Assembly: GCF_001194135.2 (NCBI RefSeq)
Contig: NC_068994.1
Span: 17,193,085 to 17,257,084 of the forward strand
Source: Octopus bimaculoides
Taxonomy: Eukaryota
Length of the DNA stretch: 64,000 bases
Direction: 5' to 3'
The stretch's first letter is position 1; every line of letters starts with the position of its first letter. A model generated the notes under the pieces. The model was not told where the DNA came from. It did not search any database and saw only the letters and a program-made list of their open reading frames with translations. Positions 3,640-63,330 of this stretch are shown here, in pieces. The position numbers and the translations under genes were made by a program.

Positions 3640-4099
3640 TTCTTCATATACTTATCCATAATGTGAAGGTTACACCAACAGCACTCTCAAACCACAACAT
3701 TGTTGAACTATGTATGGTCCTGTGCAAACTGTTGGTGTCTACCCTATCAGGAGGACTCAAGCCTTATCCAACCTGAATTTCCATAAGGTGAAATGGGAAT
3801 CGGTCCACAAAGTGATCCACAAAGGAAACTGGTCCAACATTCTGCGTATGCAAGACATTGATCTGAAACTCAGCCAGTTTATGCAAGCTATATGCACTAA
3901 ATATGTCCCAGAAAGAAAGGCCAGCACACTGCACGTGTCCAAGGGGAGAAGGGAAGACAAGATTCCCAGGGACAGAAAAATCCTCATGGGACATCTCAAA
4001 GCAGCTGAATAGACAACTGACAGATAGAGAAATGTCTGTCTTAACACAGACGCTCCTAGAAATTGAAAGCAAGATCAAACTCTCTCATGAAAGGGAAAG

Positions 4100-4146
<47 letters not shown>

Positions 4147-5460
4147 GGGCTGTGGAAAGCATAAAAACAAATTCCAAAGCTTTCTCTAAATTCGCAAAGG
4201 AAACAGCTACAATACAATATAAAATAGGACCATCGTTCCAAGGAAATGACTCGCAGCAGACCCAGGAAGAATAAGTGAGATACTCAGTGACCAATTTAAA
4301 AGTGTCTTCCCTTCCCCCCTTGGACACATGCAGATAAAAAATCCAGCTGAATTCTTTGATATTGCAACTCTGAAAAAGGAGGTGCCAGCCATCGATTACA
4401 TCAACATTGAGGGAACAGATGTAACAGCGGCCATAGATGAAATGAGCTCATGCTCCGCCACTGATCCTGATGGCTTCCCAGCTATTCTCCTAAAGTCATG
4501 TAAGCAGGCTTTATTGAAACCACTTCAGATACTTTTCCAAAGTTTCCTTGCAAGTGGTATACTTCCTAAAAACCTGAAAGAAGGTATTATATGCCCTATC
4601 CACAATGGTGGAAGCAGAGCAGATACCAAAAACTACAGGTCAATCTCTCTGACTTCGTACATCAGTAAAGTCATGGAGCGAATCATCAGAACGAAGTTGA
4701 TAATGTTCCTAGAAGAAAATGACCTACTGAACAATACCCAGCATGGCTTCCGCCCAGGAAGAAGCTGCCTCACACAGCCCCTTCAGCACAAGGTTGAGAC
4801 CTTGGCATTGCTGGTAAACTGGGAGAGTGGCTGCATGACTTCCTTAAAAACAGAAGTCAGGTAGTTGCAGCCAATGGCGCCCTTTCTGAGGAAACTGAAA
4901 TCGTAAGTGGTGTCCCCCAGTGAACTGTTCTGAGGCCATTACTGTTCATAATAGCCCTCTTAGACATGCCCACAATCACTCAAACAGCCACTGTCACTAG
5001 CTATGCCAATGACACAAAATTACCACTGGCAGTAAAAAACCAAGAGGATGCTACAAGCTTACAGCGGGACCTGAACTCAGTGTACAAGTGGGCCGAAATA
5101 AATAACATGCAGTTTAATGCTGGAAAATTTCAAGTACTGCAATATAAACTCAGTATAAATGCAGTACAATGTACATTTACAGGACCCGAAGGCACTACAA
5201 TCCCAGAGTCACAGGCAGTGAAAGACTTGGGGATCAGCATGTGCAATGACGCATTATTTCATATGCACATAAGCAAGATGGCAGCAAAGTGCAGACAACT
5301 GGCAGGATGGATACTGAGGTCCTTCAAGACAAGAGACCAAGAAATTATGTTGACCCTGTGGAGAACCTTTGTTCTCAGCCACCTGGACTACTGTTCCCAG
5401 TTATGGTCACCACATAGCACCAAACTAACAGCGGAGCTTGAAGCAGTCCAATGCCACTAC
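3640..5460 (+). mobile_element. CR1/L2-group LINE ORF2 (end of APE endonuclease plus reverse transcriptase), decayed and internally deleted
   Basis: LSNHNIVE (SDH-like motif), NYRSISLTSYISKVMERI, QHGFRPGRSCLTQ, SGVPQ*TVLRPLLF, YANDT (mutated YADD), VKDLGI, LDYCSQLWSP; (GA)n expansion at 4106-4141. Confidence 0.9.
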
Positions 5461-6697
5461 TCAGGGGAGAAAAACTAGAAGTAGTTGATAGCTTCCGCTN
5501 NNNNNNNNNNNNNNNNNNNNNNNNNNNNNNNNNNNNNNNNNNNNNNNNNNNNNNNNNNNNNNNNNNNNNNNNNNNNNNNNNNNNNNNNNNNNNNNNNNNN
5601 NNNNNNNNNNNNNNNNNNNNNNNNNNNNNNNNNNNNNNNNNNNNNNNNNNNNNNNNNNNNNNNNNNNNNNNNNNNNNNNNNNNNNNNNNNATGGCAGTGA
5701 AACATGGGCCATGACTGCTGAAGACATGCGTAAGCTCGCAAGAAACGAAGCCAGTATGCTCCGATGGATGTGTAATGTCAGTGTGCATACTCGACAGAGT
5801 GTAAGTACCTTGAGAGAAAAGTTAGTCCTAAGAAGCATCAGTTGTGGTGTGCAAGAGAGACGATTGCGCTGGTATGGACATGTGGCAAGAATGGATGAGG
5901 ATAGCTGTGTGAAAAAGTGCCACACCTTAGCAGTTGAGGGAACTTGTGGAAGAGGTAGACCCAGAAAGACCTGGGATGAGGTGGTGAAGCACGACCTCCG
6001 AACTTTAGGCCTCACTGAGGCAATGACTAGTGACCGGTACCTTAGGAAATATGCAGTACGTGAGAAGACACTGCAAGCCAAGTGAGACCATAATCTGTGG
6101 CCTCTGCCAGAAGTGTAGCCAGCTCACTTATTCGTATCTTTACTTCGTTAGACACTAAACTCTGCTTGCAAAGACCTGTTGGGGCAAGTGAAATTGAAAT
6201 CGTAATTGAACCGTATTCGATGACTGGCACCTGTGCCAGTGGAGTACTAACAGCACTGTCTGAGTGTGTTCATTGCCAGAGCAGCTGTCTGACTTCCTTG
6301 CTAGGGGCTCGTAAATAGCACCATTCGAGCGTGATCATTACCAGCGTCGCCTTCTGGCACTTGTGCCTGTGGCACGTTAGAAAATCATTCGAGCAAGGTC
6401 ATTGCCAGTGCCGCTGGACTGGCTCCCGTGCTGGTGGCATGTAAAAAACACCATTTTGAGCTTGGCCGTTGCCAGTACTCTGCGACTGGTCCTCGTGCCG
6501 GTGGCATGTAAAAACACCTACTACAGTCTCGGAGTGGTTGGCATTAGGAAGGGCATCCAGCTGTAGAAACTCTGCCAGATCAGATTGGAGCCTTGTGCAG
6601 CCTACTGGCTTGCCAGTCCTCAGTCAAATCATCCAACCCATGCTAGCATGGAAAGCAGACGTTAAACGACGACGATGATGATGACAACGATGATGAT
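5461..6697 (+). mobile_element. RTE-clade LINE, 5'-truncated: ORF2 C-terminus, 3'UTR with about 66-bp tandem units, (GAT)n tail
   Basis: GEKLEVVDSFR, then after the N-gap MLRWMCNVS...RRLRWYGHVARM...GRGRPRKTWDEVV; tail gttaaacgacgacgatgatgat; nearly identical copy at 34659-35430. Confidence 0.95.
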
Positions 6698-8189: not shown

Positions 8190-8632
8190 TGTCTTTTCAT
8201 CATCAAAAGTCTGTTTTCTATGCTAGCATGGGTAAGACTGTTTGACTGGAGCTGATAATCTGGAGGGGTGGACTGGGCTCCAGTCTGTTTGGGCTTGGTT
8301 TCTATGGATGGATGCCTTTCCTAATGTCAACCACTCCACAGAGTGTACTGGATGCCTTTTATGTCTCACTGATACTGGCCACAACTATGATTTCGCTTAG
8401 CTTGACATGTCTTCTCAAGCACAGCAAATTGCCAAAGGTCTTGGTCACTTGTCATCACTTCCCTGTGACTCAACATCTGAAGATCAAACTTCACCACCTT
8501 CTCCCACGTCTTCCTGGGTCTACCTCTTCCACAGGTTCCCTCTATAGTTAGAAATTGGAACTTCTTTATGCAGCTGTCCTCATCCATATGCATCACATGA
8601 ACATACCAGTTCAGTCTTCTCTCTTGCATATT
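8190..8632 (-). mobile_element. Older RTE LINE 3' fragment
   Basis: MQERRLNWYVHVMHMDEDSCIKK...GRGRPRKTWEKVV plus diverged RTE 3'UTR and tail. Confidence 0.85.
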
Positions 8633-9189
8633 ACAGAGAAGACTGTGCTGGTATAATCATATGGCAAAAAGCTGTGATTTGAGAGATTTTGGCCTTTATT
8701 TCAAGCCGGTTGAACTCATTGGCTTTCTTGGTAAAGGAAGGGGGCAGTGGTGGCGGTGGTTGCAGTGGCACGACATGGTGAAAATAATGATGATGATGAT
8801 GAATTTTTTAATAGGCATGAAGTTTCCTTTATATCCTTATAATAAACAAAGTTTGTTTACCACTGAAAACACTAAATAAAATTAATAATATTTCAGGTTT
8901 ATCATCTCATTTAAATTGATTCGACCATTTCACAGATAACTGCGCACTTATTTTCCGAAAATGTAATTGGGGTGGCCAAGTTAGCGGTGTGTTTGCTCCT
9001 ATTTCTAGCAATCCATGTACTATCTATTTCACTATAATGCTTTTTACAGAGCGAAAAATACTCCCCCTCCAACTTTCTTTTAGTTTATACATTACATTTA
9101 TTCCTTTGAACTCACTGCTGGACCTCTGCTTTTTCTCTATATATATTTGTCCCTCTGTATGTCTCTATCTGTCTCGCTATCTCTTTGGT

Positions 9190-9275
<86 letters not shown>

Positions 9276-9341
9276 TGTATATATATATATCTCTCTCTCT
9301 CTCTGGTTATATATATATGTCTCTCTCTCTTTCTCTGGTTG

Positions 9342-9393
<52 letters not shown>

Positions 9394-9420
9394 TGTATAT
9401 ATGTCTCTCTCTCTCTCACT
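9190..9420. repeat. Compound microsatellite (TG)n, (CT)n with ctggttgtatatat interspersed units
   Basis: Directly visible. Confidence 0.95.
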
Positions 9421-9600
9421 ACCACTACTTCTGTTTCTCTTAAGAGAAAATATACGTGAGACAGATAGAAAGGGGATTAGGGAGAAAAAACAAGTGAGAC
9501 AGAGGGGGGAAGAGACAGAAAATATAGAATAGAGCACCGTACAAACTGGGCTGAAGTCTGGGAGGCCTGCTAGTACATATATATATATATATATATATAT

Positions 9601-9765: not shown

Positions 9766-10029
9766 ATATATAATATATATACACATCACTTCTTGAATTA
9801 TCTGCATCGCTCTTGTATCAGAATGCATTGTGCTCATTGAAGTAGCTTTCAATGATGGTCTTTGAAAATGTCTTAAACTGTAATTGGACTTGTGTATCCT
9901 GCTTGGATGGTTGGTGAGTTTGAAGGCAGTGTATATATATGTTTATTGTGTTATTGTTTTATATTATTGGCTTTTCTTTTTAATATTTGAATTTATAGCA
10001 TGTTGCATGCTTTATTGATGATTGTACCA

Positions 10030-10726
10030 TTATATATGTCCTGGATGCAAGGCACTTTATTTCATATTACTCCCGTACATACAGCTTAAAATTATTATAC
10101 ACAATTGCTGGAGTTAACTTTACAATGGACTGGCATCCTATTCATAGCAGAGTCTTATTTCATTTGCTTTACACTTCAGAAAATGGGATAAGTTCTGGCC
10201 TAATGAGTCGGGTTAAGCACCTACATAAAAATGTTAAAATTTGTTTCAAGACAATGAATGACATCAGTGATTATGAAGCTTTTAGTTACATAAAAGTGAT
10301 TTTTAGACCATTAATGCTGTATTGCAGGTTGGTTATAATTCTATGTTTATGTGTACATATTGATTATTTTTCTTGATATGCATTTTATGTGTCAAGTGGC
10401 TGTGTTTAGATTTGTTATCTAAATTCATAGAAGGTCTTCAGAGGTGGGAAGATTTTTGAGATGTGTGGTTTTCAGTAAGTGAGGTTTTGATGTTTGTGTT
10501 TTCAGCTTAGATATCTCAAAGTACATTTTGGTGCTGTTATCTTTCGAAATGTTATGTTTATTACTTTGACTACAATCTCAGCTTTCAAGATTTAACCATC
10601 CAGTGTGTTTGGTGTATTTATTTTCTTGATACAGGTCTCTGTGATAAATCTTTATTGTCCCACGACCTTCTAACTGTAACTGCTTCCTTTTTTTGCATAT
10701 TATCCAGTGAATTATGTACTATATTC
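10030..10726 (+). pseudogene. Degenerate SLC16/monocarboxylate-transporter-like (MFS) sequence, N-terminal to middle part
   Basis: Broken frames SLKLLYTIAGV...GLASYS*QSLISFALHFRKW, HFMCQVAVFR and YLKVHFGAVIFRNVMFITLTTISAF resemble MCT TM4-6 and the loop-TM7 motif; many stops. Confidence 0.45.
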
Positions 10727-10982
10727 ATCCATTCTTAAGATGTCAGAGTCAAATTTGAGAGAACACATAGAGGTTTTCTCGTAGGCTCAAGTTTTCCCCA
10801 TATGCAATTTATTGTGTAGACAAGCAGTTTTTCCAGTCCAGAATAGAAGAACATGGAAACTGAATATAGTAAGATATATTGCTTAATATATATTTTATGT
10901 ATACAACTGTGAACTTGCTTACAAAATATAGAATCATGTGCAGCCATTTTCAGAATGCGACTTCATTTCTGTTGGCTAATTC

Positions 10983-11641
10983 TCATTTCTGTTGGCTAAT
11001 ACGATTCTTTTTTCTCATACAAGTAATCAGTAAGTATGTAGCTCCTAATAGCAAAACCATAAGAATTTCAAATAATCTAGTGAGATGAAAAGCAAAGTCA
11101 TAACTGTGTGTAAGATCTGTGAGTTTATCTACAATAGTTGCCATTGGTATTGCACATATACCATTTACAGTGTAAGTATAACCAATCGCTAGTGGGTAAG
11201 CTTCAATACCAACAACTTTTTTTGAAGACCAAGAGAAGTAATGTGGAGAACAAGTCACTAGACAATCCATTCAAGACTATCAGGAAAACTAACAGTGAAC
11301 AAGTATTGTACAAAGCAGCAAAAATGAAGACCATTCCACTAGTACTACAAACAATGTAAAATATGAGAATGTAGTACATAATTCACTGATTAATATGCTA
11401 AAGGAGGAAGCGGTTACAGTTAGAAAGTCGTGGGACAGTAAAGATTTATCACAGAGACCTATATCAAGGAGATAAATATATCAAACACACTGGATGGTTA
11501 AATCTTGAAAGCTGGGGTTGTAGTCAAAGTAATAAACATAACATTTCGAAAGATAACAGCACCAAAATGTACTTAGAGATATCTAAGCTGGAAACACAAA
11601 CATCAAAACCTCACTTAACAAAAACCACACATCTCAAAAAT
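10983..11641 (-). pseudogene. Degenerate SLC16/MCT-like C-terminal part (about TM7-TM12)
   Basis: YYILIFYIVCSTSGMVFIFAALY...FSTLLLLVFKK, +1 frameshift in an A7 run (11217-11223), then VVGIEAYPLAIGYTYTVNGICAIPMATIVDKLTDLTHSYDFAFHL, resembling MCT TM10-12 (xxDxTGSYDxAF pattern). Confidence 0.62.
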
Positions 11642-12042
11642 TCTTTTCTGCCTTATATATATATATATATATATATNNNNNNNNNNNNNNNNNNNNNNNN
11701 NNNNNNNNNNNNNNNNNNNNNNNNNNNNNNNNNNNNNNNNNNNNNNNNNNNNNNNNNNNNNNNNNNNNNNNNNNNNNNNNNNNNNNNNNNNNNNNNNNNN
11801 NNNNNNNNNNNNNNNNNNNNNNNNNNNNNNNNNNNNNNNNNNNNNNNNNNNNNNNNNNNNNNNNNNNNNNNNNNNNNNNNNNNNNNNNNNNNNNNNNNNN
11901 NNNNNNNNNNNNNNNNNNNNNNNNNNNNNNNNNNNNNNNNNNNNNNNNNNNNNNNNNNNNNNNNNNNNNNNNNNNNNNNNNNNNNNNNNNNNNNNNNNNN
12001 NNNNNNNNNNNNNNNNNNNNNNNNNNNNNNNNNNNNNNNNNN

Positions 12043-12250: not shown

Positions 12251-12614
12251 ACTACATATATACATATATATAAGGCAGAAAAGAAACGTTGTGATTCTCT
12301 GACTTTCTCCTTAGTCTGTTAGCTGTTTGATCCTTTTGGTAAAGCAGTGTTGAAAGCTTCATCACCATCATCATTATTGGTATTAGCATCTTATTTTTCT
12401 TTCCCCTTTTTTTTAGTCTTAATTCTTCTCCTTGTCTTTCTTCTTCATTAGCTGTTATTTTCTGTTTTGTTTTCATTTTCTTTTGTTCTTCAGATTTCTT
12501 CTACTCTTCTTCATTTCTTCTTTTATCTGTTTTCTGTCTTTCTCTTCATCTCTTCTTCATCATTTATTCATTTTTTTTCAATTTCCTTCTTCCTTTTCCT
12601 ATTCATATACACTA

Positions 12615-12786
12615 TAAGCACCCACTACACTCTCAGAGTGGTTGGCATTAGGAAGGGTATCCAGCTGTAGAAACTCTGCCAGATCAGATTGGAGCCTGGT
12701 GCAGCCTTCTGGCTTGCCAGTCCTCAGTCAAATCGTCCAACCCATGCTAGCATGAAAAGTGGACGTTAAACGATGATGATGATGAT
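12615..12786 (+). mobile_element. RTE 3' tail fragment with (GAT)n
   Basis: Matches 6520-6690. Confidence 0.9.
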
Positions 12787-13189: not shown

Positions 13190-13501
13190 CACTAGTTGTT
13201 GTTGTTGGCACTCCGTCGCTTATGGAACAGCCTGCTCGTGAAATTAACGTGCAAGTGGCTGAGCACTCCACAGACACGTGTACCCTTAACGTAGTTCTCG
13301 GGGATATTCAGCGTGACACAATGTGACAAGGCTGACCCTTTGAATTACAGGCACAACAGAAACAGGAAGTAAGAGTGAGAGAAAGCTGTGGTGAAAGAGT
13401 ACAGCAGGGTTCGCCACCATCCCCTGCCGGAGCCTCGTGGAGCTTTAGGTGTTTTTTCGCTCAATAAACACTCACAATGCCCGGTCTGGGAATCGAAACC
13501 G
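13190..13501 (-). mobile_element. tRNA-derived SINE family D, head lost in gap
   Basis: Near-identical to 29124-29521; (AAC)n tail. Confidence 0.9.
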
Positions 13502-18360: not shown

Positions 18361-19186
18361 TTTATTTGTCTGTCTGTCAGTCACTCGTTCATTCATTTCA
18401 GGCAGCAGGTTGCCCAGACTAAAATCACTCTTTCCTTCCAAGTATTTTTGTCTTTCATGACATTTCTGAAGGCTTCTGTTTGTAACTTGGTATCATGAGA
18501 GAGTTGATTAATGTATGTCATTCTGGATCATTCAACATGAGAATTCTCATGGCTCCAATTCGCAGAATTCATTTTTGCTTTGATAGTAATGACCAGCATA
18601 TCTTGTCCTTCACTTTTAAATGATTGATATGTTGGGGATATTTCCATAAAGCACTTCTTTCATTGGATATTGTTTCCATGATTTGTTGTGAACAGCAACT
18701 AACACATGTGCATAGGCCCCATCAAGCTTATTTTCTATCTTTTTTATCAGAGTCCATGCTGATGAGCCAAAGAGAAGAACTGGTTCTACTATGGTTTTGA
18801 AAAATTCCCTTTTTATCCAGTCAGGCAGTGTAGACTTCCAAATTTTCATTTGTTTCATATCTTCTATGCTTTTGCTGTGCAAATTGATATATCTTTTTTG
18901 GTGGATGAAATATCAATTCTGAGAAAAGTGACAGACTTGACTTTCTTCAGAGATGTACCACTCATTGAGTGGATCTGACCATTCTGGTTAAAGCATATGA
19001 ATATTCAATCTTCCCAGCATTCACATAGATTGATCCTGAAAGCTGCCTCTTCTAGTGCATGCAACAGTTTTTCAGTATCTGTTACCTTGTCAGTAAATAG
19101 TGCAGGGTTGTTCGCATAGTTACCAACAGTGATCTTCCTGGCTGGCTACCTCCTGCTTCTAGCTTTTTGTAGAGAAAAGCCAATAT
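18361..19186 (-). mobile_element. Old RTE LINE: RT motif 5 to C-terminus and tail
   Basis: GFSLQKARSRR*PARKITVGNYANNPAL (mutated YADD), EKLLHALEEAA, VEPVLLFGSSAWTL...LDGAYAHVL...LYGNIPNIS. Confidence 0.88.
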
Positions 19187-19805
19187 TACAGGAGAGATAA
19201 ATAGACGTATGCAAAACAAGAAAGGTGCTGGTCTGGAGGAGATCACCACTGAAGTTTGGAAGACAAGAAACTGTATTGATAATCTTCTGCAATTCTGCAT
19301 TCATATGTACAACCAATGTGCAATCCAGGTCTGGACAGAAGGATGCATTGTCCTGTTATTGAAGTAAGGGGACCTATCACTGACTACCAGCTATAGTGTT
19401 ATCACATTTACAGCTATTGCTGCTAATATCTACAATGTAATGTGTAATTGAATCCAACCTGAAATCAAGAAAGTTTTTCATTTGAACCAGAGCAGATTCA
19501 GAAAGAACAGATTGACTCTTGGGCAGATATTGATTGTAAGAAGAATCATCAAAGGAGTGAGGGTAAGGAACTTAGAGGCAGTTATGTGCTTTGTGGGCTT
19601 CTTGAAGGTCTTTGATTCAGTGCATCAAGAAAAGATGGCTGAAATAGTGAGGACCTATGGGATATGGCAAGAAACAATGGATGCAATCTTGATGTGTAAG
19701 AAAACAAAATCAGTGGTGCAATCCTGTAGTAGTGATAGAAACTCTTATGATATTTAAGTGGGAGTACTACAGGGCAATACACTTTTACACTTCTTGTTCA
19801 TCTGT
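19187..19805 (+). mobile_element. Same RTE: RT N-terminal half in inverted orientation
   Basis: MQNKKGAGLEEITTEVWK...NQSRFRKNRLTLGQILIVRRII...FDSVHQEKM...VGVLQGNTLLHFLF. Confidence 0.88.
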
Positions 19806-22948: not shown

Positions 22949-23647
22949 CATCATCATCATCATCATCGTCGTTTAACGTCCGCTTTCCATGCTAGCATGG
23001 GTTGGACGATTTGACTGAGGACTGGTGAAACCAGATGGCTACACCAGGCTCCAATCTGATTTGGCAGAGTTTCTACAGCTGGATGCCCTTCCTAACGCCA
23101 ACCACTCAGAGAGTGTAGTGGGTGCTTTTTACGTGCCACCGGCACGAAGGCCAGTCAGGCGGTACTGGCAACGGCCATGCTCAAAATGGTGTATTTTATG
23201 TGCCACCCGCACAAGAGCCAGTCCAGGGGCACTGGCAACGATCTCGCTCAAAAGTCCTTACACATGNNNNNNNNNNNNNNNNNNNNNNNNNNNNNNNNNN
23301 NNNNNNNNNNNNNNNNNNNNNNNNNNNNNNNNNNNNNNNNNNNNNNNNNNNNNNNNNNNNNNNNNCCAATGAGGGAGACGACGTTGGCATGGGTGCCAGA
23401 CGTCAAATTTAACTCAATTTCGATTTCACTTGCCTCAACAGGTCTTCGCAAGTGGAGTTTAGTGTCCAATGAAGGAAGGAAGGTACGCATAAGTGGACTG
23501 GCTGAGGCCTTAGATTTAGGTCTCACTTGGCTTGCCGGGTCTTCTCACGCACAGCATATTTCCAATTGGCAGTGTTTCTACAGCTGGATGCCCTTCCTAA
23601 CGCCGACCACTCAGAGAGTGTAGTGGGTGCTTTTACATGCCACTGGC
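22949..23647 (-). mobile_element. RTE 3' fragment with an extra tail segment at its 5' end; 7-bp TSD
   Basis: WKYAVREKTRQAK* then 3'UTR and (GAT)n tail; ctgtgtt at 22942-22948 and 23648-23654. Confidence 0.85.
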
Positions 23648-29123: not shown

Positions 29124-29521
29124 TTGTTGTTGTTGTTGTTGTTGGCACTCCGTCGCTTACGACGTCAAGGGTTCCAGTTGATCCGATCAACAGAACAGCC
29201 TGCTCGTGAAATTAACGTGCAAGTGGCTGAGCACTCCACAGACATGTGTACCCTTAACGTAGTTCTCAGGGATATTCTGCGTGACACAGTGTGACAAGGC
29301 TGACCCTTTGAATTACAGGCACAACAGAAACAGGAAGTAAGAGTGAGAGAAAGTTGTGGTGAAAGAGTACAGCAGGGTTTGCCACCATCCCCTGCCGGAG
29401 CCTCGTGGAGCTTTAGGTGTTTTCGCTCAATAAACACTCACAACACCTGGTCTGGGAATCAAAACCGCAATCCTATGACCGCGAGTCCGCTGCCCTAACC
29501 ACTGGGCCATTGCGCCTTCAC
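29124..29521 (-). mobile_element. Full-length SINE family D with 14-bp TSD
   Basis: Minus head gtgaaggcgcaatggcccagtggttagggc...ttttgattccc; (AAC)n tail; TSD taacgcttcatatg 29110-29123 / taatgcttcatatg 29522-29535. Confidence 0.95.
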
Positions 29522-29934: not shown

Positions 29935-30112
29935 TAAAAAGCACCCAGTACACTCTGTGGAGTGGTCAATGCTAGGAAGAGCATCCAACCATAGAAATCA
30001 TACCAGAACAGATAATGGAGGCTGGTGTGGTCTCTGGCCTTACGAGCTCCAGTCAAACCATCCAACCTATGCCAGCATGGAAAATAGATGTTAAATGATG
30101 ATGATGATGATA
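29935..30112 (+). mobile_element. Diverged RTE tail
   Basis: aaaagcacccagtacactc...gttaaatgatgatgatgat. Confidence 0.8.
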
Positions 30113-34658: not shown

Positions 34659-35430
34659 ACAGGTCTTCGGAAGCGGAGTTTAGTGTCCAATGAAGGAATG
34701 TTACGCATAAGTGGGCTGGCTACATCCCTGGCAGAGGCCTTGGATTTTGGTCTCACTTGGATTGCCGGGTCTTCTCATGCACAGCATATTTCCAAAGGTC
34801 TCGGTCACAAGTCATTGCTTTGGTGAGGCCTAATGTTCGGAGGTCGTGCTTCTCCACCTCATCCCAGGTCTTCCTGGGCCTGCCTCTTCCACGGGCTCCC
34901 TCAACCACTAGGGTGTGGCACTTTTTCACACAGCTATCCTCATTCATTCTCGCCAAATGTCCATACCAGCGCAATCGTCTCTCTAGCACACCACAACTAA
35001 TGCTTCTTAGATTCAACTTTTCTCTCAAGATACTTACACTCTGCCGGGTATGCACACTGACATTACTCATCCATCGAAGCATACTGGCTTCATTCCTTGC
35101 GAGCTTACGCATGTCTTCAGCAGTCACGGCCCATGTTTCACTGCCATGTAGCATGGCTGTTCGTACACATGCGTCATACAGTCTACCTTTTACTCTGAGT
35201 AAGAGGCCCTTTGTCGCCAGCAGAGGTAAGAGCTCTCTAAACTTTGCTCAGGCTATTCTTATTCTAGCAGCTACACTTTCAGTGCACCCTCCCCCTCTAC
35301 TAACTTGGTCACCCAGATAGCGGAAGCTATCAACTACGTCTAGTTTTTCTCCCTGGAATGTGACAGAAGTTGTTTTCTGCACATTTTCAGTGTTTATTGC
35401 ACCTGAACATCTGCCACATACAAAAACTAA
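34659..35430 (-). mobile_element. RTE LINE ORF2 C-terminus and start of 3'UTR (rest in gap)
   Basis: GEKLDVVDSFRYLGD...MLHGSETWAVTAEDM...RRLRWYGHLARM...GRPRKTWDE. Confidence 0.95.
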
Positions 35431-42474: not shown

Positions 42475-43630
42475 AAAGGGTGTATACGCATTGTAAAGTA
42501 GGTGTTTATTAAAATACATTTCATTTTCAAAATTTAATAGAATCTACAGACATTATTTATTGTTTTGTCAACGCCTGTTTTCAAACTGATGTCCGTTTTG
42601 GTCCAGGCACTGCTGTCAACGCGAAGCAATGGAATCGCAAACATCACGAAACAATTTCGTTTGGTATTTGTGTGCATTCTCGTTCAATGGCTACTCTCAA
42701 ATCAGCGACTGTTGCAAGTTTCATAGTGTAGACTTTGTCTTTTAGGTATCCCCATAAAAAAATGTCTAGTGGTGTGAGGTCTGGTGAACGCGGAAGGTAT
42801 TCAACGAAACCCCTTCATCCAATCCACCTGTTTAGCAAGATCCCATCAAGGACGGGTCTAACATCGCGATGGTAGTGTTGCGGTGCCCCAACTTGCTGAA
42901 AATAAAACTCTTCTCCAATGCTTGGCATGACAGACTGTTGCAGTAATTTCAAGTAAACGGGACCAGTCACAGCACCGTCAAAAAAGAATAGTCCAATTAG
43001 TCCTCTTGATGATAGGCAACACTACACTGTAACTCCTGGTAAATTAACGTGGTGTTTCACCATAACATGCGGATCGTCAGGCCCTAGTAGGTGCAATTGT
43101 AGCGGTCAATTGAACCATTTAATTTGAATGTAGCCTCACCACTCCACACAATCTTTGTTGGAAAGTGTGCATCTTCTACACATCGTGCCAAGTATCTCGC
43201 AATACTACACTCTTCGGTCTGGATCATCGTCATTAATAGCATGGACTAATCTTGGAAAGTAACTTTTCCATTGACAACGCTTCAAAATACGTTGGACAGA
43301 CGATTTTGAAATACCTCCCTCACGACTCGCTTACCTCACAGATATTCTTGGGCTTTAGTGATACGTTTCCAGCACTCCTTCTTGCTTCGTTCAGGTTGTC
43401 GATATTCATGGTCTTCCGGAACGCTTTTCGTGGACATTCTGAACAGTTCCACCGGCTTCAAACTTATCTCTAATTTGAATGATGTTAAGTCGCGTTGGTG
43501 GATCTATTTGAAACTCCATCTCAAACTGTCTTTGCACTTTGACTGCGTTTTCACACTTCCAGTAGCATTTTAGAATGAATTTCCTTTATTCAAAGCTTAG
43601 TCTGACTGCCATCATTAATTCGTGTTGGTT
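42475..43630 (-). mobile_element. Tc1/mariner DD41D-type transposase pseudogene
   Basis: [13 protein letters not shown] (D to G), [12 protein letters not shown] (D to V), PRSPDLTPLDIFLWGYLKDKVY; 41 residues between the second and third catalytic positions. Confidence 0.88.
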
Positions 43631-48254: not shown

Positions 48255-49060
48255 GTCAGCCTCAGCTTCAACCATGACTTCCAGATGGCTCCAGAACCTG
48301 ACACGTGTTTCTCACTGTATTGCTAGGAAAATCATCAATCACCTCCTTGATCTTGACCACCAGCCTGGCCTTGGTGTTGCAGGTAGTGTAGTTGGTAATC
48401 ATTCTCAACTGCAGCCTAAACATAGTAATCCATTGGATTACATTTGGGGGAATTAGAAGGCCAGAAAGTGGGGCTGGTGATGTCGTAGAAATTCTCCAAC
48501 AACCACTTCTGACTCTTTCCGGAGGTATAGCAAAGAGCCAATTTCTACTGCTACATATATCCCTTCCAGGAGTAAATTTCTCCATCAAGGGTTTTGACTA
48601 AAGTCTCCTGCAGTTTCACATAGCCTCCTGAATTGAGCCGAAGACCGTATTCAAAGATATGGGCTGGCATGACGTCATCTTCACTGGAGATAAATCTAAA
48701 AACCATCACAGTTTGGGGGAACTTGGTTTTCATATGTGGAAACATAACACGTGTTGTAGGCAAGCTACCTGTTATTCTGGCTGTGGTGGAGCTGGTCCTT
48801 GCAGCAGATGTTTTTATCCATCTGAGAAGAACTAAGAACTTCTTGGCCTTGACTGTCAGAATTTGTCCCTTGCACCTCTTGTATGAGTGGTAACAATGAT
48901 CCTCATTCAGAGCCAGCTTCATGGTGGTGATTGCAACACCTTCATTTGGTTCTTGAACATCCAGCATTGAGATCAGGTCTGGATGAGGATTCGTTATGTG
49001 CTAGCAATTTGAAAATTCAAATTTTAAGAGAACTCCAAAAACTTGTGAACTTACAAGTTT
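48255..49060 (-). mobile_element. Tc1/mariner DD37D (maT) transposase pseudogene
   Basis: MKTKFPQTVMVF..ISSEDDVMPAHIF, QQ...CYTSGKSQKWL, WPSNSPKCNPMDYYV; 37-residue spacing. Confidence 0.88.
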
Positions 49061-55050: not shown

Positions 55051-56460
55051 GCTATTCGTGGCACTCTGTCAGTTACGACGACGAGGGTTCCAGTCAGCCT
55101 GCTCGTGAAATTAACGTGCAAGTGGCTGAGCACTCCACAGACACGTAGTTCTCGGAGAGAGATTCAGTGTGACAAGGCTGGCCCTTTGAAATACAGGTAC
55201 AACAGAAACAGGAAGAAAGAGTGAGAGAAAGTTGTGGTCAAAGAGTACAGCAGGGTTCTACGATAATAGATACTAATGAAAATCCAATGGCAGGATGCAG
55301 GAACTCTAAGTTCAGAATTAGTTCTCGATAAACAGTCTTGTTTTTCACCACTTCAGGTGAGACATTCACATCTGCTAGGGAGCTGATTTCTGCAGCAGTG
55401 CATGATCTTTGTTCTCTGTCTCATAGAAAAATATCAAATCTGATGTGTTGTGCATCTGGTTGTTGTTCCTAGAGGAATGTATCACCTGTATTCTTTAATT
55501 TTAACTCTTTGGAGATGGAGCCTCATTTGGAGTTTTAGTGCCAAGAAGACGGAACCCTTTTGACAAGCCCTACAGAAGGCATACACTTATTTTTCAAAAA
55601 AATTATTACAAAATAAAGTAATTGCTTTACATATATAAAACTATATATATTCTTGTGGGAAATTTAATGAACTAATACAGTCTTCTTTGTCATTCAACTT
55701 TTTGACTGATAAATAGACCCTATTGTTTCCCAAGGGTTAAAGGTGTGGATACATTCTGCTTTTATTGTGCCTTTGATATGACTGCCAGGACAATCCTTCC
55801 TATAGATAACATTGTAAATAGTTTCAATAACAATAATGTCATGTCTTATGGGAAAGTAATATCATGTGGACATTTTTGGGGTAGTTGCTGATGATATATG
55901 AATAATAACCTCCACACTATATGATGCCGGCAGCATTTTCTACTCCAATATAATTCACTTGTCCCTTCCTTTCAGCAGATCTACTGTCTCATTCCTAAAA
56001 CACTGGAAGCACCTTCATCCATTTTATTGATAATTTATTTAGTAGCTGTTTCCTGTTTCTGAATAGTGACAGTGTATTTTTGTAGGTGGCATGTGATATA
56101 TTTATCACAGGCCCAGGAGAAGCTAATCTGTCTGTCATTGTTGTTTGTATTCTTTTCTTTGGTGGATATTATCATCATCACCACGTAACATCCATGTTCC
56201 ATGCTGGCATGGGTTGCATGGTTTGACAGGCTCCAATGGGCCCAAGGACTGCATCATGCCCCAGTGTCTGCTTTGGTATGGATGCCCTTTTTTAATGCCA
56301 ACCACTTTACAGCGTATACTAGGTGCTTTTTTTCACCTGTCTATAATCTTAAGTAGGTTAGCTACCCTTGGATCACAAGGAACAGCTTTACCCTCAGAGT
56401 ACCTATTCTAGAGTTGTTCATCTCTTTCTAAGTTATTATGTTCACTGTTCAATAAGTGTG

Positions 56461-58234: not shown

Positions 58235-58440
58235 TGCTGCATGATTGGCACCCATGCCAGTGGCACATAAAAAGCACCCACTACACTCTTGGAGTGGTTG
58301 GCATTAGGAAGGGCATCCAGCCATAGAAATCATGCCAAATCAGATTGGAATCTGGTGCAGCTCTCCAGCTTACCAGTTTTCAATCAAACCGTCCAACCCA
58401 TGCCAGCATTGAAAATGGACGTTAAAGGATGATGGTGATG
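58235..58440 (+). mobile_element. RTE tail fragment
   Basis: aaaagcacccactacactc...ggacgttaaaggatgatggtgatg. Confidence 0.85.
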
Positions 58441-61139
58441 ATGGTACTCTTCTTCTTATTCTAATCCTGAGCAAGCAGACCTATCATTAACGGCATTTCA
58501 GCTGTGCCCAGACCAACCCTTCTTTTTTGTCAGACTTCATTATCTTGTTTGTTCCTCCCCCTTTTTTTTTTATTTAGATAGTGGGCTGTGGTGTATGGGA
58601 GATTTGGCTGATACTTATAGCAAGTCTTGCAACAACATAGATGCCACTTCATTGACTGTCATAGTAATTTTTCATGCAACAGGTGTTTTCCATATACAAG
58701 TCCATACGAGAAGAGTTGCTTCCGCATTCACATACACACATGCACATATATACACATGTACATGTGTATGCATATTCATGTAGTTCTATATCCATTTCTT
58801 TGTTTGTATTGTTTTCCTTTTACATCCTGTAACTTTAGCAGTTTGACAAATAGAAATTTGTTAAAATAAGTAACTGACTGAAATAAACTGTGGACTTGAT
58901 ATGATTGACTAAGACCTTTGAAGGCAGCAACTCAGATATCTTAAGTACACTGACTGAAATAAATAAGAGGATCATAGCTCACAGCAGTCTTCGTTGCACT
59001 TTCAATATATCAACCTCATTTCTTGTACAACGTCAAAGTAATAAGTAAACAAATCCTGAAACATGTCTGGTACTTGTCTGAACACAGTGTTATTATTTTA
59101 GTTAGTGTTTATTATCTTTGCTTTGAAGCCCCAACACATACACACTCCAAAGGTGATTAAATACAAATAATTTACTGGAGTTAATCAATCAAATAAACAA
59201 CTTTCACCATTCAAACTGCAGATTTTGTATCTCATCAAAAGGAATCATTATTCTCACTTCTATCTTCATCATCTTGTTTGTTTTTACTGCTCTGGAGTTT
59301 TAGCATATTTATAGTTTCAATTTAAAGTTGGAGTACTCAATGTTTGAACCAGGCACAGGCAGCCTTTATAGGAAGCAGGCCACATGAGACATGGCTCATG
59401 ATCAAGCAGATTGCACAGTTAAAATATCCCAGGTAATTTTTTGTTAGGCATGCCATTCAGGATGTCCTGCAGGTCACAGGTTACCCATGACTTGTTTAAA
59501 ACTATAGTTATTTTTGCTGCTAAAATATTTCTTAATTTTCCTCAGTAATCTTTGTCTTAGTCAAGTTCACCTGTAAGGTATAGATAACTTCTAATACCTG
59601 TCTGACTGTTGGTATTATTGTGTTAGTTTTGTTTGATCTCATGTGACACCATGGCCAGATATCTTCTACTATAGACCCAGGTAGTGAAATTAGGTAGCTC
59701 TTCAGATGGGTTACTTAAATTTATCCCCTAGGATGAAAGCCCATCAGATTACTTATACCTGTCTTGGCTAGAAAACTTAATCCTTTACCTGGTTAAACAC
59801 CACAACTTGATTCTTGGCTGCTTATACTGTGTCTGCTCTGTTACAAGCATTCAGTGAGATCTCTGTGATAAGATATTGAAATATTCCTCCTTTTCCTGGA
59901 TTAGTCTTGAAGGCTCTGTAAAAAGGTAATGAACATTGTCCTTCCTCTTCTGACTAAAGTTCAAGTCTGTCTTGAGCCTACAAGCCCATCAATTTGGAGC
60001 TGATCCTAGTTTATCCTGGAGCTGATCCTGATTTATGAGGTGTTTAAGTGATTAGAAGTACAAAACCTCTCTTGAACAAGATACCACTCCAGTACACCCT
60101 TTCCCTAGCTGAGTGGACTGAAACAATATGAAATGAAATATTGTGCTCAAGAACACAATATACTGCCTGGTCTCAGAATTGAACCCATGTCCTAAATATC
60201 TGACTTGACCCATAAAAAGAAAAAAAGATACACTACATAAAAATAGTCTTCAATTGTACTTCTATAACTCAGTTATAAGATTTTCCATGGTTAACATGTC
60301 TTTGAATGTTACATCAAAAGCCAATTTCTATTAGAAATATTATAGTTTTTGTGTACGTTGAAAGGAGCCATATATGTACTTGTTCATATCTTATGTTTTT
60401 TTTTAATAATTTTAAAATCACAAGCACTCATCTAAAACTGCTCTTAATAAGCTTTGAAATGTAAGTTTGTTATCCAGAAACAAAGCAACACTAATTAGTT
60501 ACTGTGTGGCTTTCATATAAATTATGATTATACATAAATGACATGATCCCACTCTTTCATTTAAAAGAACTTTGTCTATATTTATTTATGTTACTATTGA
60601 TGATTGCAGAAAATTTTCTTTTTAAATATTGCAATGTTGATATTTTTTAGCATAAATCAGCTCTGATCAAAGGCTTTCAAGTAATGACTATCTTGTCTGT
60701 CTCTCAGGGATTCATTATCCAATGTGTCTTTTTTTAAAGATGTATGATTTAAGTAGATTTAGCTGCTATTGCTAGCAAATCAAACTCCTGTGTAGAAGTT
60801 CTTTTGTTTATTCCAAGAAAGGTTTAATGTGCACCTTAGAGATTATGCTTTTGTGACACGAGTTCATAACCCAACTTTGGCTAATTTTCTCACAGATTCA
60901 TGGAGTTTCCTTAGTGATGACAAGGGAGATAACTATTCCTTCATAATATGAGGTGGGATTAGAAATTTGAATTTAAAATTCGGGAATTACAAGGAAAAAG
61001 ATGCATAGAAATTGTTTTACATGAAATATTTTGTCTTGATACACAACTTTCATAGACTGAGGTAATAAAACAACCCTTACTAACTCCTCTTTTCCAACTT
61101 ATCATAATGTTCTTTAGCCCCAGGTCAGGCCTCATTTAA

Positions 61140-62074: not shown

Positions 62075-62259
62075 CATCATCATCATCATCATCGTTTAAC
62101 GTCCGCTTTCCATGCTAGCATGGGTTGGACGATTTGACTGAGGACTGGTGAAACCGGATGGCAACACCAGGCTCCAGTCTGATTTGGCAGAGTTTCTACA
62201 GCTGGATGCCCTTCCTAACGCCAACCACTCAGAGAGTGTAGTGGGTGCTTTTACGTGTC
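62075..62259 (-). mobile_element. Young RTE tail (continues into gap)
   Basis: Nearly identical to 22950-23130. Confidence 0.92.
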
Positions 62260-63330
62260 NNNNNNNNNNNNNNNNNNNNNNNNNNNNNNNNNNNNNNNNN
62301 NNNNNNNNNNNNNNNNNNNNNNNNNNNNNNNNNNNNNNNNNNNNNNNNNNNNNNNNNNNNNNNNNNNNNNNNNNNNNNNNNNNNNNNNNNNNNNNNNNNN
62401 NNNNNNNNNNNNNNNNNNNNNNNNNNNNNNNNNNNNNNNNNNNNNNNNNNNNNNNNNNNNNNNNNNNNNNNNNNNNNNNNNNNNNNNNNNNNNNNNNNNN
62501 NNNNNNNNNNNNNNNNNNNNNNNNNNNNNNNNNNNNNNNNNNNNNNNNNNNNNNNNNNNNNNNNNNNNNNNNNNNNNNNNNNNNNNNNNNNNNNNNNNNN
62601 NNNNNNNNNNNNNNNNNNNNNNNNNNNNNNNNNNNNNNNNNNNNNNNNATATATATATACATATATATATATATACATATATATATATACATATATACAC
62701 ATATATATATATACATATATATATATACATATACCTATATACATATATATACATATATACATATATGCTATGGCACCCTCTCCAGACACAGCACAATTGT
62801 CGTGAGCAGCTTTTGCAGCCTTAGAACCTTGATTAAAAAGCAAAAAAAGGAGGTGTCGAAAATGCTCGTTTTTCTTAACTTGACATTCCATTTTAATGAT
62901 CTGAAAATAAACAAAAATTAACTAAAATTAACTAGAAAAAAAAACAAAATAGATTCCAAAATTTTAAAACGCAATAAATTCCAAGATTTAAAAAAACGAC
63001 GGGAACTTAGTTGCCGGCCTAATATATACATATATATATATATAAAGGATGGGCTTCTTACAGTTTCCATCTCCAAATCTATTCACAAGGCTTTGGCTAG
63101 CCTGATGCTATAGTAGAAAATATTTGCTTCAGATTCCATGCAGTGGGACTGAACACAGACCCATGTGGTTGGGGAGCAAGCTTGCATAAAAGTTTATTGG
63201 TATTTTATACATGCTCAAATCTTGTTTTTGTTTTCTACAGAATAAATTCAAACAGAATTGATATTTATTTGTCAGTTGAAATATCTTCTTTGTACTCTGG
63301 TGTAAAAAATATTTGGTTTTAATCTCTAGA

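Follow-up and report, generated by a model that had tools for sequence, protein, structure and literature searches.

New processed pseudogenes are 5'-truncated in 74% of cases, and 21% of them contain an inversion with microhomology at the junction, an arrangement credited to twin priming, which inverts without duplication (PMC3996531). In the account given there, twin priming (Ostertag and Kazazian, 2001, as cited in PMC3996531) is the source of the 5' inversion in LINE-mediated processed pseudogenes. L1/TPRT events also yield inverted duplications and fold-backs, which arise through self-annealing at microhomology (10.1101/2024.12.14.628481). Pseudogenes that form hairpins and give rise to endo-siRNAs have precedents in mouse, fly and human, the human case being psiPPM1K (PMC3616710).

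The locus described here lies within a 64-kb stretch of Octopus bimaculoides DNA (the window, to which positions refer unless a comparison locus is named) and contains two inverted copies of a 275-nt sequence, at 10452-10726 and 11367-11641, around a 640-nt spacer. Ungapped alignment of the two arms gives 21 mismatches (17 transitions and 4 transversions), an identity of 92.4% and no indels. An earlier description made from the DNA letters (the original prediction) had given the same arms and spacer with roughly 92% identity, and in this it was exact. Across the 64-kb window the arm sequence has no copies beyond these two. Arms and spacer are contained in a single gap-free contig (5691-11676), and an assembly gap, on which the original prediction was silent, starts 36 nt past the right arm. 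The alignments presented below indicate that the locus is probably a 5'-truncated processed pseudogene (retrocopy) of an octopus SLC16-like MFS transporter mRNA with a fold-back. In gene sense, which is the minus strand, its layout is inv(U2) - exon4' - exon5 - U1 - U2 - U3, where U2 is the 275-nt segment of the 3'UTR (Table 1).

Four paralogous loci were compared, so that about 155 kb of octopus DNA was sampled. Three of the genes form an O. bimaculoides tandem cluster on CM046623.1, namely P0008 (locus L003), P0009 (L001; XP_014790367.1, the middle gene) and P0018 (L004), and the fourth is the O. sinensis paralogue P0002 (L002). The coding sequence of the window copy is 91.3% identical to P0009, 83.9% to P0008, 82.2% to P0002 and 80.6% to P0018. 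The parental SLC16 gene sought by the original prediction is thus to be placed, together with the retrocopy reading and with the same good probability, in the lineage of P0009, the closest among the four sampled paralogues; the U2 arms diverge from the P0009 UTR by 8.4% (left) and 9.5% (right). P0018, the 499-aa gene of the cluster, was rejected as the parent, being 81%/74% identical and having a UTR without the arm. The flanks of the locus have only interspersed repeats (95-97% identical) in common with the 72-kb cluster region.

Table 1. Features of the fold-back pseudogene and its flank (window positions)
Feature	Position	Strand	Basis or remark
U3, distal 3'UTR-derived segment (N-terminal segment A of the original prediction)	9784..10451	-	Collinear with L001 and L003
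Left arm: U2, resident 3'UTR segment in its original collinear position	10452..10726	-	Inside the collinear alignments to three paralogue downstream regions
U1, proximal 3'UTR-derived segment from stop codon to left arm, part of the spacer	10727..10982	-	Collinear blastn matches to L001, L003 and L002
Transporter coding remnant, pseudogene	10983..11377	-	P0009 codons 358-486: 3' part of exon 4 fused to exon 5; stop codon 10983-10985
Exon 4/exon 5 junction without the parental intron	11128..11129	-	Window ...ACTATTGTAG/ATAAACTCACAG... vs L001 exon 4 end ...ACTATTGTAG/gtaa and exon 5 start ttctag/GTAAAATCACAG
A7 homopolymer (A6 in paralogue), +1 frameshift splitting the frame	11217..11223	-	TTC-AAAAAAGTTG in the L001 paralogue vs TTCAAAAAAAGTTG in the window
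Fold-back junction, imperfect 10-11-nt microhomology GTACT[A]CATTC	11367..11377	-	Common to the antisense of the U2 5' end and to exon 4
Right arm: additional U2 copy, inverted relative to the pseudogene, on its truncated 5' end; only in the window	11367..11641	+	Reversed-orientation match to paralogue UTRs
Outer flank of right arm	11642..12042		14-mer TTCTTTTCTGCCTT, (TA)n at 11654-11676, then 366-N assembly gap at 11677-12042

The arms consist of untranslated sequence. Window sequence aligns collinearly, at 82-88% identity, with exon 5 and the ~1.0-1.2 kb that follow the stop codon of P0009, P0008 and P0002. In blastn alignments, window 11137-10063 matches L001 19872-20929 (87.8%), 9783-10985 matches L001 1201-21 (83.3%) and 9783-11137 matches L003 24663-23335 (83.1%). 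The P0009 alignment ends at window position 10063, while those to P0008 (L003/L001) and P0002 (L002) run on to 9783; P0018 shows only a short similarity just beyond its stop codon. The left arm falls inside this collinear block and is therefore the resident 3'UTR segment. U2 is single copy in each paralogue that has it (L001 20278-20550; L001 280-553, equivalent to L003 23742-24015; L002 20909-21185), and in none of these three does it have an inverted partner. The right arm matches L001 20278-20554 at 89.6%, in the orientation opposite to the rest of the copy. Beyond the one copy per U2-bearing paralogue UTR, the ~155 kb of sampled octopus DNA contained no further copies of the arm. These alignments do not bear out the layout of the original prediction, A-B-inv(3'UTR)-inv(C)-inv(B), in which A and B were coding, the arms were a repeated coding middle segment and the hairpin consisted of transporter coding sequence. 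The whole of 9784-10982, left arm included, is collinear with paralogue DNA downstream of the stop codon, and segments A (9880-10451) and B (the arms) are noncoding because they match neither residues 1-357 nor exons 1-3 nor the 5' part of exon 4. Since the arms of the actual layout are UTR, the stem of the hairpin is UTR sequence.

The transporter itself is represented by the last 129 codons of P0009, an MCT12/14-like gene, and on the minus strand only. The window was searched by tblastn with seven relatives and later with the four closest full-length paralogues, and all matches were confined to 11370-11001 on the minus strand. P0009 residues 358-408 match 11370-11218 (-) and residues 407-479 match 11222-11004 (-), whereas residues 1-357 have no tblastn match anywhere in the 64 kb, and neither exons 1-3 nor the first 519 nt of exon 4 have a match there at the DNA level. 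About three quarters of the transporter protein is therefore missing from the window copy. The original prediction had also assigned MCT-like N-terminal and middle segments to the plus strand; these were not recovered, as stops occur throughout the six frames of 9880-11641, the arms contain no Pfam MFS match and tblastn finds the minus strand only. By contrast, its placing of the transporter C-terminus, a stop codon and then 3'UTR on the minus strand proved right, and the C-terminus and stop codon are located within the spacer.

The affiliation of the remnant with the MFS superfamily is carried by some searches and not by others. A 95-aa minus-strand ORF in the spacer (10983-11270) matches an O. 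bimaculoides "monocarboxylate transporter 14-like" fragment (E 2e-31, 77% identity). A further search placed the family among octopus "MCT12/13/14-like" proteins, which are distant (27-29%) from fish MCT12, and the full-length relatives from a profile search are genuine MFS_1 proteins according to Pfam. However, the spacer ORF, the left flank and all frames of the arms remained without an MFS match in Pfam, the terminal fragment being shorter than the model requires; homology was established by the other searches. The MFS assignment of the original prediction accordingly stands on tblastn homology to MFS_1 paralogues at 11370-11001 (-), and it is not matched by a Pfam hit for the window translations. 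A complete 12-TM MFS domain in an open frame is absent from the window copy, whereas the paralogues do contain Pfam MFS_1. Exact-protein look-ups of the window ORF, P0001 and P0012 in public assemblies found nothing on record.

The remnant has decayed. Its two tblastn segments are in different frames and overlap at KK, where an A-homopolymer is one base longer than in the paralogue (Table 1); a frameshift within a homopolymer could in principle be a sequencing error. When changes were polarised with three outgroups, the window branch received 17 nonsynonymous and 4 synonymous changes and that of P0009 received 4 and 6 (Fisher p=0.04), and 15 of the 82 residues that are invariant in the paralogues are altered in the window copy. 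With its remnant frameshifted and evolving neutrally, the locus is not a functional SLC16/MFS transporter gene.

The copy was made from RNA. The last base of P0009 exon 4 is L001:19122 and the first of exon 5 is 19881; the 758-nt intron 4 that separates them (L001:19123-19880) is missing to the base in the window copy, between 11129 and 11128. All four paralogues (P0009, P0008, P0002 and P0018) have an intron at the same codon, and its absence is therefore the derived state. Homology starts inside exon 4, at ~11377, and thus the copy is 5'-truncated. The precise loss of the intron, the 5' truncation in exon 4, the frameshift and the ratio of 17 nonsynonymous to 4 synonymous changes together define a processed pseudogene, and alignment to the paralogues shows a spliced mRNA copied from the 3'UTR back into exon 4. 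The SLC16/MCT-like pseudogene folded back on itself that the original prediction had proposed is supported in this form, although its intron-less, mRNA-derived nature had been missed. Only sequence of transcribed type is present (exon 4', exon 5 and ~1.2 kb after the stop codon), with a sharp end, in an unrelated and repeat-rich setting.

The ends of the copy are less clear-cut. Homology ceases at 9784/9783, its last bases being ...GTGATGT; L003 and L002, which are orthologous loci, remain alike further on. Neither a clean poly(A) tail nor a canonical AATAAA is found at this 3' homology end; ~26 nt of TA-rich low-complexity sequence lie past 9784 and may be a decayed tail or the product of a non-L1-type RT. 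No target-site duplication (TSD) is identifiable, and both ends abut TA-rich sequence. On the 5' side, the (TA)n tract and the 366-N gap hide the insertion boundary. UTR homology was also sought past the gap, after 12043, and none was found there; an extension of the right arm across the gap was rejected for this reason. LINE/RT fragments are present in the window, with a sub-threshold Pfam match to RVT_1 at 4328-4864 in the neighbouring long ORFs, and LINE activity is documented in octopus (PMC9115989).

The junction between right arm and exon 4 suggests how the fold-back arose. The arm alignment ends with ...GTGAATTATGTACTA[C/T]ATTC and the exon 4 alignment starts with ...CCAGTACT-CATTCTCATATTTTACA, so that the two blastn segments overlap at 11367-11377; in antisense, the U2 5' end reads ...GTACTATATTC, as compared with ...GTACT-CATTC... 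in exon 4. The U2 5' end adjoins exon 4 and the U2 3' end is outermost. Reverse transcription of the spliced mRNA would have proceeded from the 3'UTR into exon 4 until, on reaching codon ~358, the extending 3' end jumped to another template via the 10-11-nt microhomology, after which at least 275 nt of already-made 3'UTR would have been copied in the opposite direction. The route may have been snap-back self-priming of the first-strand cDNA on its own U2, or fold-back of the end of primary RT; an atypical twin-priming (second priming) event would be an alternative route of equal topology. A fold-back or self-priming variant is needed because classical twin priming inverts without duplication. 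The outcome would be inv(U2)-exon4'-exon5-U1-U2-U3, with the inverted repeat as an insertion scar and the ability to form a stem as its by-product.

Substitutions in the arms bear on the timing of this step. Pairwise divergence within U2 is 7.6% between left and right arms, 8.4% between left arm and P0009 and 9.5% between right arm and P0009, which is near star-like; orthologues from O. bimaculoides and O. sinensis are 10.3% apart in this segment. Strict polarisation yields 7 changes private to the left arm, 11 private to the right arm and 2 common to both. As the common changes are so few beside the 7 and 11 private ones, the fold-back is placed at or just after retroposition, and the substitution pattern speaks for one event, or close to one. 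Those parts of the pseudogene that are single copy have changed by 4.6-6.5% on the window branch (U1, 16 changes in 248 columns), and the divergence between the arms is below twice this neutral branch (21 changes observed against ~30 expected, P=0.05). The 2 common changes and this deficit leave room for a short delay, for some gene conversion between the arms, or for a slightly later origin at the DNA level by a replication-based switch, each of which is possible.

The last of these can be put more fully: a retrocopy, possibly longer than the present one, would have been inserted first, and a template switch in DNA replication or repair at the same microhomology (FoSTeS/MMBIR-type) would have added the inverted duplication and the 5' truncation later. 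Both the common changes and the deficit in arm divergence fit such a course, and microhomology junctions are typical of replication-based switches too. However, the private changes so outnumber the common ones that any delay must have been brief, one event at retroposition accounts for truncation and inversion together, and fold-backs associated with reverse transcription are documented (10.1101/2024.12.14.628481). A separate later switch is therefore considered unlikely, though it is a reading to be kept in mind, and a fold-back during retroposition is preferred.

Whatever its origin, the inverted repeat could form a hairpin. The predicted stem is ~280 bp long and almost continuous on either strand (MFE -529 kcal/mol for the minus, gene-sense strand and -576 kcal/mol for the plus strand), with runs of perfect pairing of up to 57 bp, and a long inverted repeat capable of forming dsRNA, as in hpRNA and endo-siRNA loci, is thus present in silico. 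Of the 21-mers in the arms, 25-31 occur unchanged in the P0009 UTR and 10-19 in the P0008 UTR. If it were transcribed, such a structure would be a ready source of long dsRNA, matching two expressed transporter paralogues exactly at many 21-mers, and a candidate for RNAi or A-to-I editing in an animal well known for editing its RNA. The fold-back might be transcribed, for instance by read-through from a neighbouring repeat or host gene, and its stem might then be processed into siRNAs against the P0009 and P0008 3'UTRs or serve as a substrate for ADAR hyper-editing. If true, this would give the cephalopods their first described hairpin-RNA regulator of pseudogene origin. The near-continuous stem, the shared 21-mers, the lack of indels in the arms and the mouse, fly and human psiPPM1K precedents (PMC3616710) speak for a functional hairpin-RNA gene of this kind. 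Against it, the ORF has no record in the public assemblies searched and no Rfam family was found at 8-14 kb with a permissive threshold. Selection on the stem is also unconvincing, as the bias towards G.U wobble pairs (12/17, p=0.14) is not significant, the deficit in arm divergence is marginal (P=0.05) and the divergence itself is near neutral; moreover, the structure is fully accounted for as an insertion scar. The Rfam search returned one sub-threshold match, to mir-1537 at 8597-8660 (35 bits against a gathering score of 63), which lies outside the feature and is taken as chance. On balance, a hairpin-RNA gene acting through endo-siRNAs or ADAR seems very improbable and, given that the structure is real, the locus is most likely, with considerable confidence, a non-functional relic.

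The locus might also be a DNA-level partial duplicate of an unsampled paralogue that itself lacks intron 4, or an exon captured by a transposon with long TIRs (a MITE or foldback element). Such an origin would agree with the absence of a visible poly(A) tail and TSD, and the search covered ~155 kb of sampled octopus DNA. However, the intron is kept in all four paralogues, the flanks are unrelated to the cluster and the arms, being homologous to the parental 3'UTR and collinear with it on one side, are not TE termini; they were rejected as a SINE/MITE pair, with no other copies in the window or at the four loci. The original prediction had held that arms matching the TIRs of a multi-copy MITE family would overturn it; instead, no multi-copy termini with TSDs were seen, and the arms match a single 3'UTR segment per paralogue in the ~155 kb. 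Duplication or capture at the DNA level is thus scarcely probable. Finally, a chimeric contig joining the UTR of another paralogue in the wrong orientation would be conceivable, since the assembly is a draft in which N gaps are frequent and one begins 36 nt past the right arm, but is hardly credible here, because the arms and spacer lie in one gap-free contig, the right arm carries 11 private changes and is 9.5-13.5% diverged from all known paralogue UTRs, a mis-join through an imperfect 10-11-nt overlap seems unlikely, and the mismatches between the arms, as the original prediction had argued, rule out a trivial assembly duplicate.

The structure can be regarded as an unremarkable consequence of reverse transcription, and it adds one more case to the processed pseudogenes whose 5' end is folded back. 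The chief value of the analysis is a correction, in that the hairpin is a retroposition scar of the 3'UTR and not folded coding sequence. In addition, the locus offers a clean and datable germline case, from a mollusc, of the cDNA end of a retrocopy folding back at microhomology; such fold-backs are so far known mostly from L1 events in human experiments and tumours. The locus also indicates that the octopus lineage had active reverse-transcription machinery able to use cellular mRNAs.

Compared with known systems, the locus shares some features with each and differs from all. The octopus SLC16/MCT-like MFS genes (XP_014790367.1 and its neighbours) are related to it in sequence, with 83% protein and 91% DNA identity to P0009 over the last 129 codons. 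The window copy lacks approximately three quarters of the protein, is frameshifted and neutral, and is therefore not a gene. Like the hairpin endo-siRNA loci of mouse oocytes, Drosophila (hpRNA) and human (psiPPM1K), it is a partial retrocopied pseudogene with an inverted repeat and 21-mers that match the parental mRNA. However, those loci owe their definition to transcription and to small-RNA sequencing, and the candidate stem in the window derives from a 3'UTR. The LINE processed pseudogenes with 5' inversion resemble it in that they too are intron-less, 5'-truncated and composed mostly of 3'UTR and the last coding part, although a poly(A) tail and TSD are not recognisable in the window copy. 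The likeness to twin priming extends to the inverted 5' segment, the microhomology at the junction (10-11 nt, 11367-11377) and the outermost position of the 3'-most end. However, twin priming inverts the next-upstream part of the RNA without duplicating it, whereas the inverted piece in the window duplicates UTR from ~900 nt downstream of the break. In the inverted duplications at TPRT ends, as is proposed for the window, a 3' end self-anneals at short microhomology and synthesis produces an inverted duplication next to or containing the insert (10.1101/2024.12.14.628481). Those cases involve mostly flanking genomic DNA and 2-bp homology, in human cells and tumours, whereas in the window it is a piece of the cDNA itself that is duplicated, with a homology of 10-11 nt, and the event is an old one in the germline of an octopus.

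Fragments of non-LTR retrotransposon ORF2 in the window show that this region is populated by elements bearing reverse transcriptase (see table). Three of these fragments are near-identical C-terminal ORFs containing the stretch RLRWYGH..GRGRPRKTW, and a sub-threshold RVT_1 match at 4328-4864 corresponds to one of the fragments. A further sub-threshold match, to the Rfam family mir-1537 (8597-8660, plus strand; 35 bits vs. a gathering score of 63), is overlapped on the opposite strand by a LINE-like ORF and is probably due to chance. By eye, some ORFs resemble remnants of mariner/Tc1-type transposases, e.g., one with a '...RWIG' stretch; Pfam gave no confirmation of a transposase for the single ORF tried (48551-48967).

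Features of the window and of the parental gene cluster
Feature	Position	Strand	Remark
non-LTR ORF2 fragment	3700-6100	+	
non-LTR ORF2 fragment	8369-8656	-	
non-LTR ORF2 fragment	18619-19754		
non-LTR ORF2 fragment	34753-35320	-	
SINE-like repeat candidate, ~180-365 nt	6319-6682, 12613-12786, 22956-23266, 29937-30112, 58242-58442, 62079-62257		window copies
second repeat family	13224-13501, 29135-29521, 55059-55258		window copies
long compound microsatellites of (TC)n, (TG)n and (TA)n	9138-9434		directly downstream of pseudogene
14-mer AAGGCAGAAAAGAA	11641-11654	-	inverted partner at 12272-12285
14-mer AAGGCAGAAAAGAA	12272-12285	+	inverted partner at 11641-11654
mariner/Tc1-type remnant candidate	42818-43021	-	likeness by eye
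mariner/Tc1-type remnant candidate	48271-49000	-	likeness by eye
right-arm A->G changes	10576, 10578, 10622, 10624, 10655, 10722		UTR-sense; left-arm-equivalent positions
three-gene MFS cluster (L003/L001/L004)	O. bimaculoides CM046623.1:25386132-25458560		head-to-tail

The parental cluster comprises three MFS genes of five exons each, encoding 481, 486, and 499 aa. NCBI names them inconsistently (MCT12, MCT13-like, and MCT14), and XP_014790368.1, an older model of 90 aa, is merely the C-terminus of the 481-aa cluster gene. The cluster shares two interspersed repeats with the window. The first, probably a SINE-like family, has another copy within intron 4 of P0009, the paralogue of the parental lineage (19415-19778 of its locus, L001), at an identity of 78-94%. 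Copies of the second are 93-97% identical to those at the cluster loci (e.g., L001 9063-9327 and L003 7688-8076), and such identity suggests recent activity as well as a common species of origin for the window and those loci.

Nine N gaps occur in the window, from 5500-5690 through 62260-62648, and most lie next to (TA)n or (CA)n tracts; the draft assembly is thus interrupted at microsatellites. The gap at 11677-12042 is flanked by an inverted pair of the 14-mer AAGGCAGAAAAGAA, each copy adjoined by a (TA)n run. The 14-mer is found only twice in the 64-kb window, where 0.1 matches are expected by chance, and was not found in the four paralogue loci. The pair could represent the ends of a ~645-bp TIR element inserted beside the right arm or, alternatively, another fold-back.

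The two arms of the inverted repeat also carry private substitutions. In the right arm (11367-11641), 6 of the 11-12 private changes are A->G when read in the UTR sense, including two pairs spaced 2 nt apart, and the majority of those private to the left arm are G->A. Though the counts are too few for a test, the pattern calls to mind an RNA template that had been hyper-edited.
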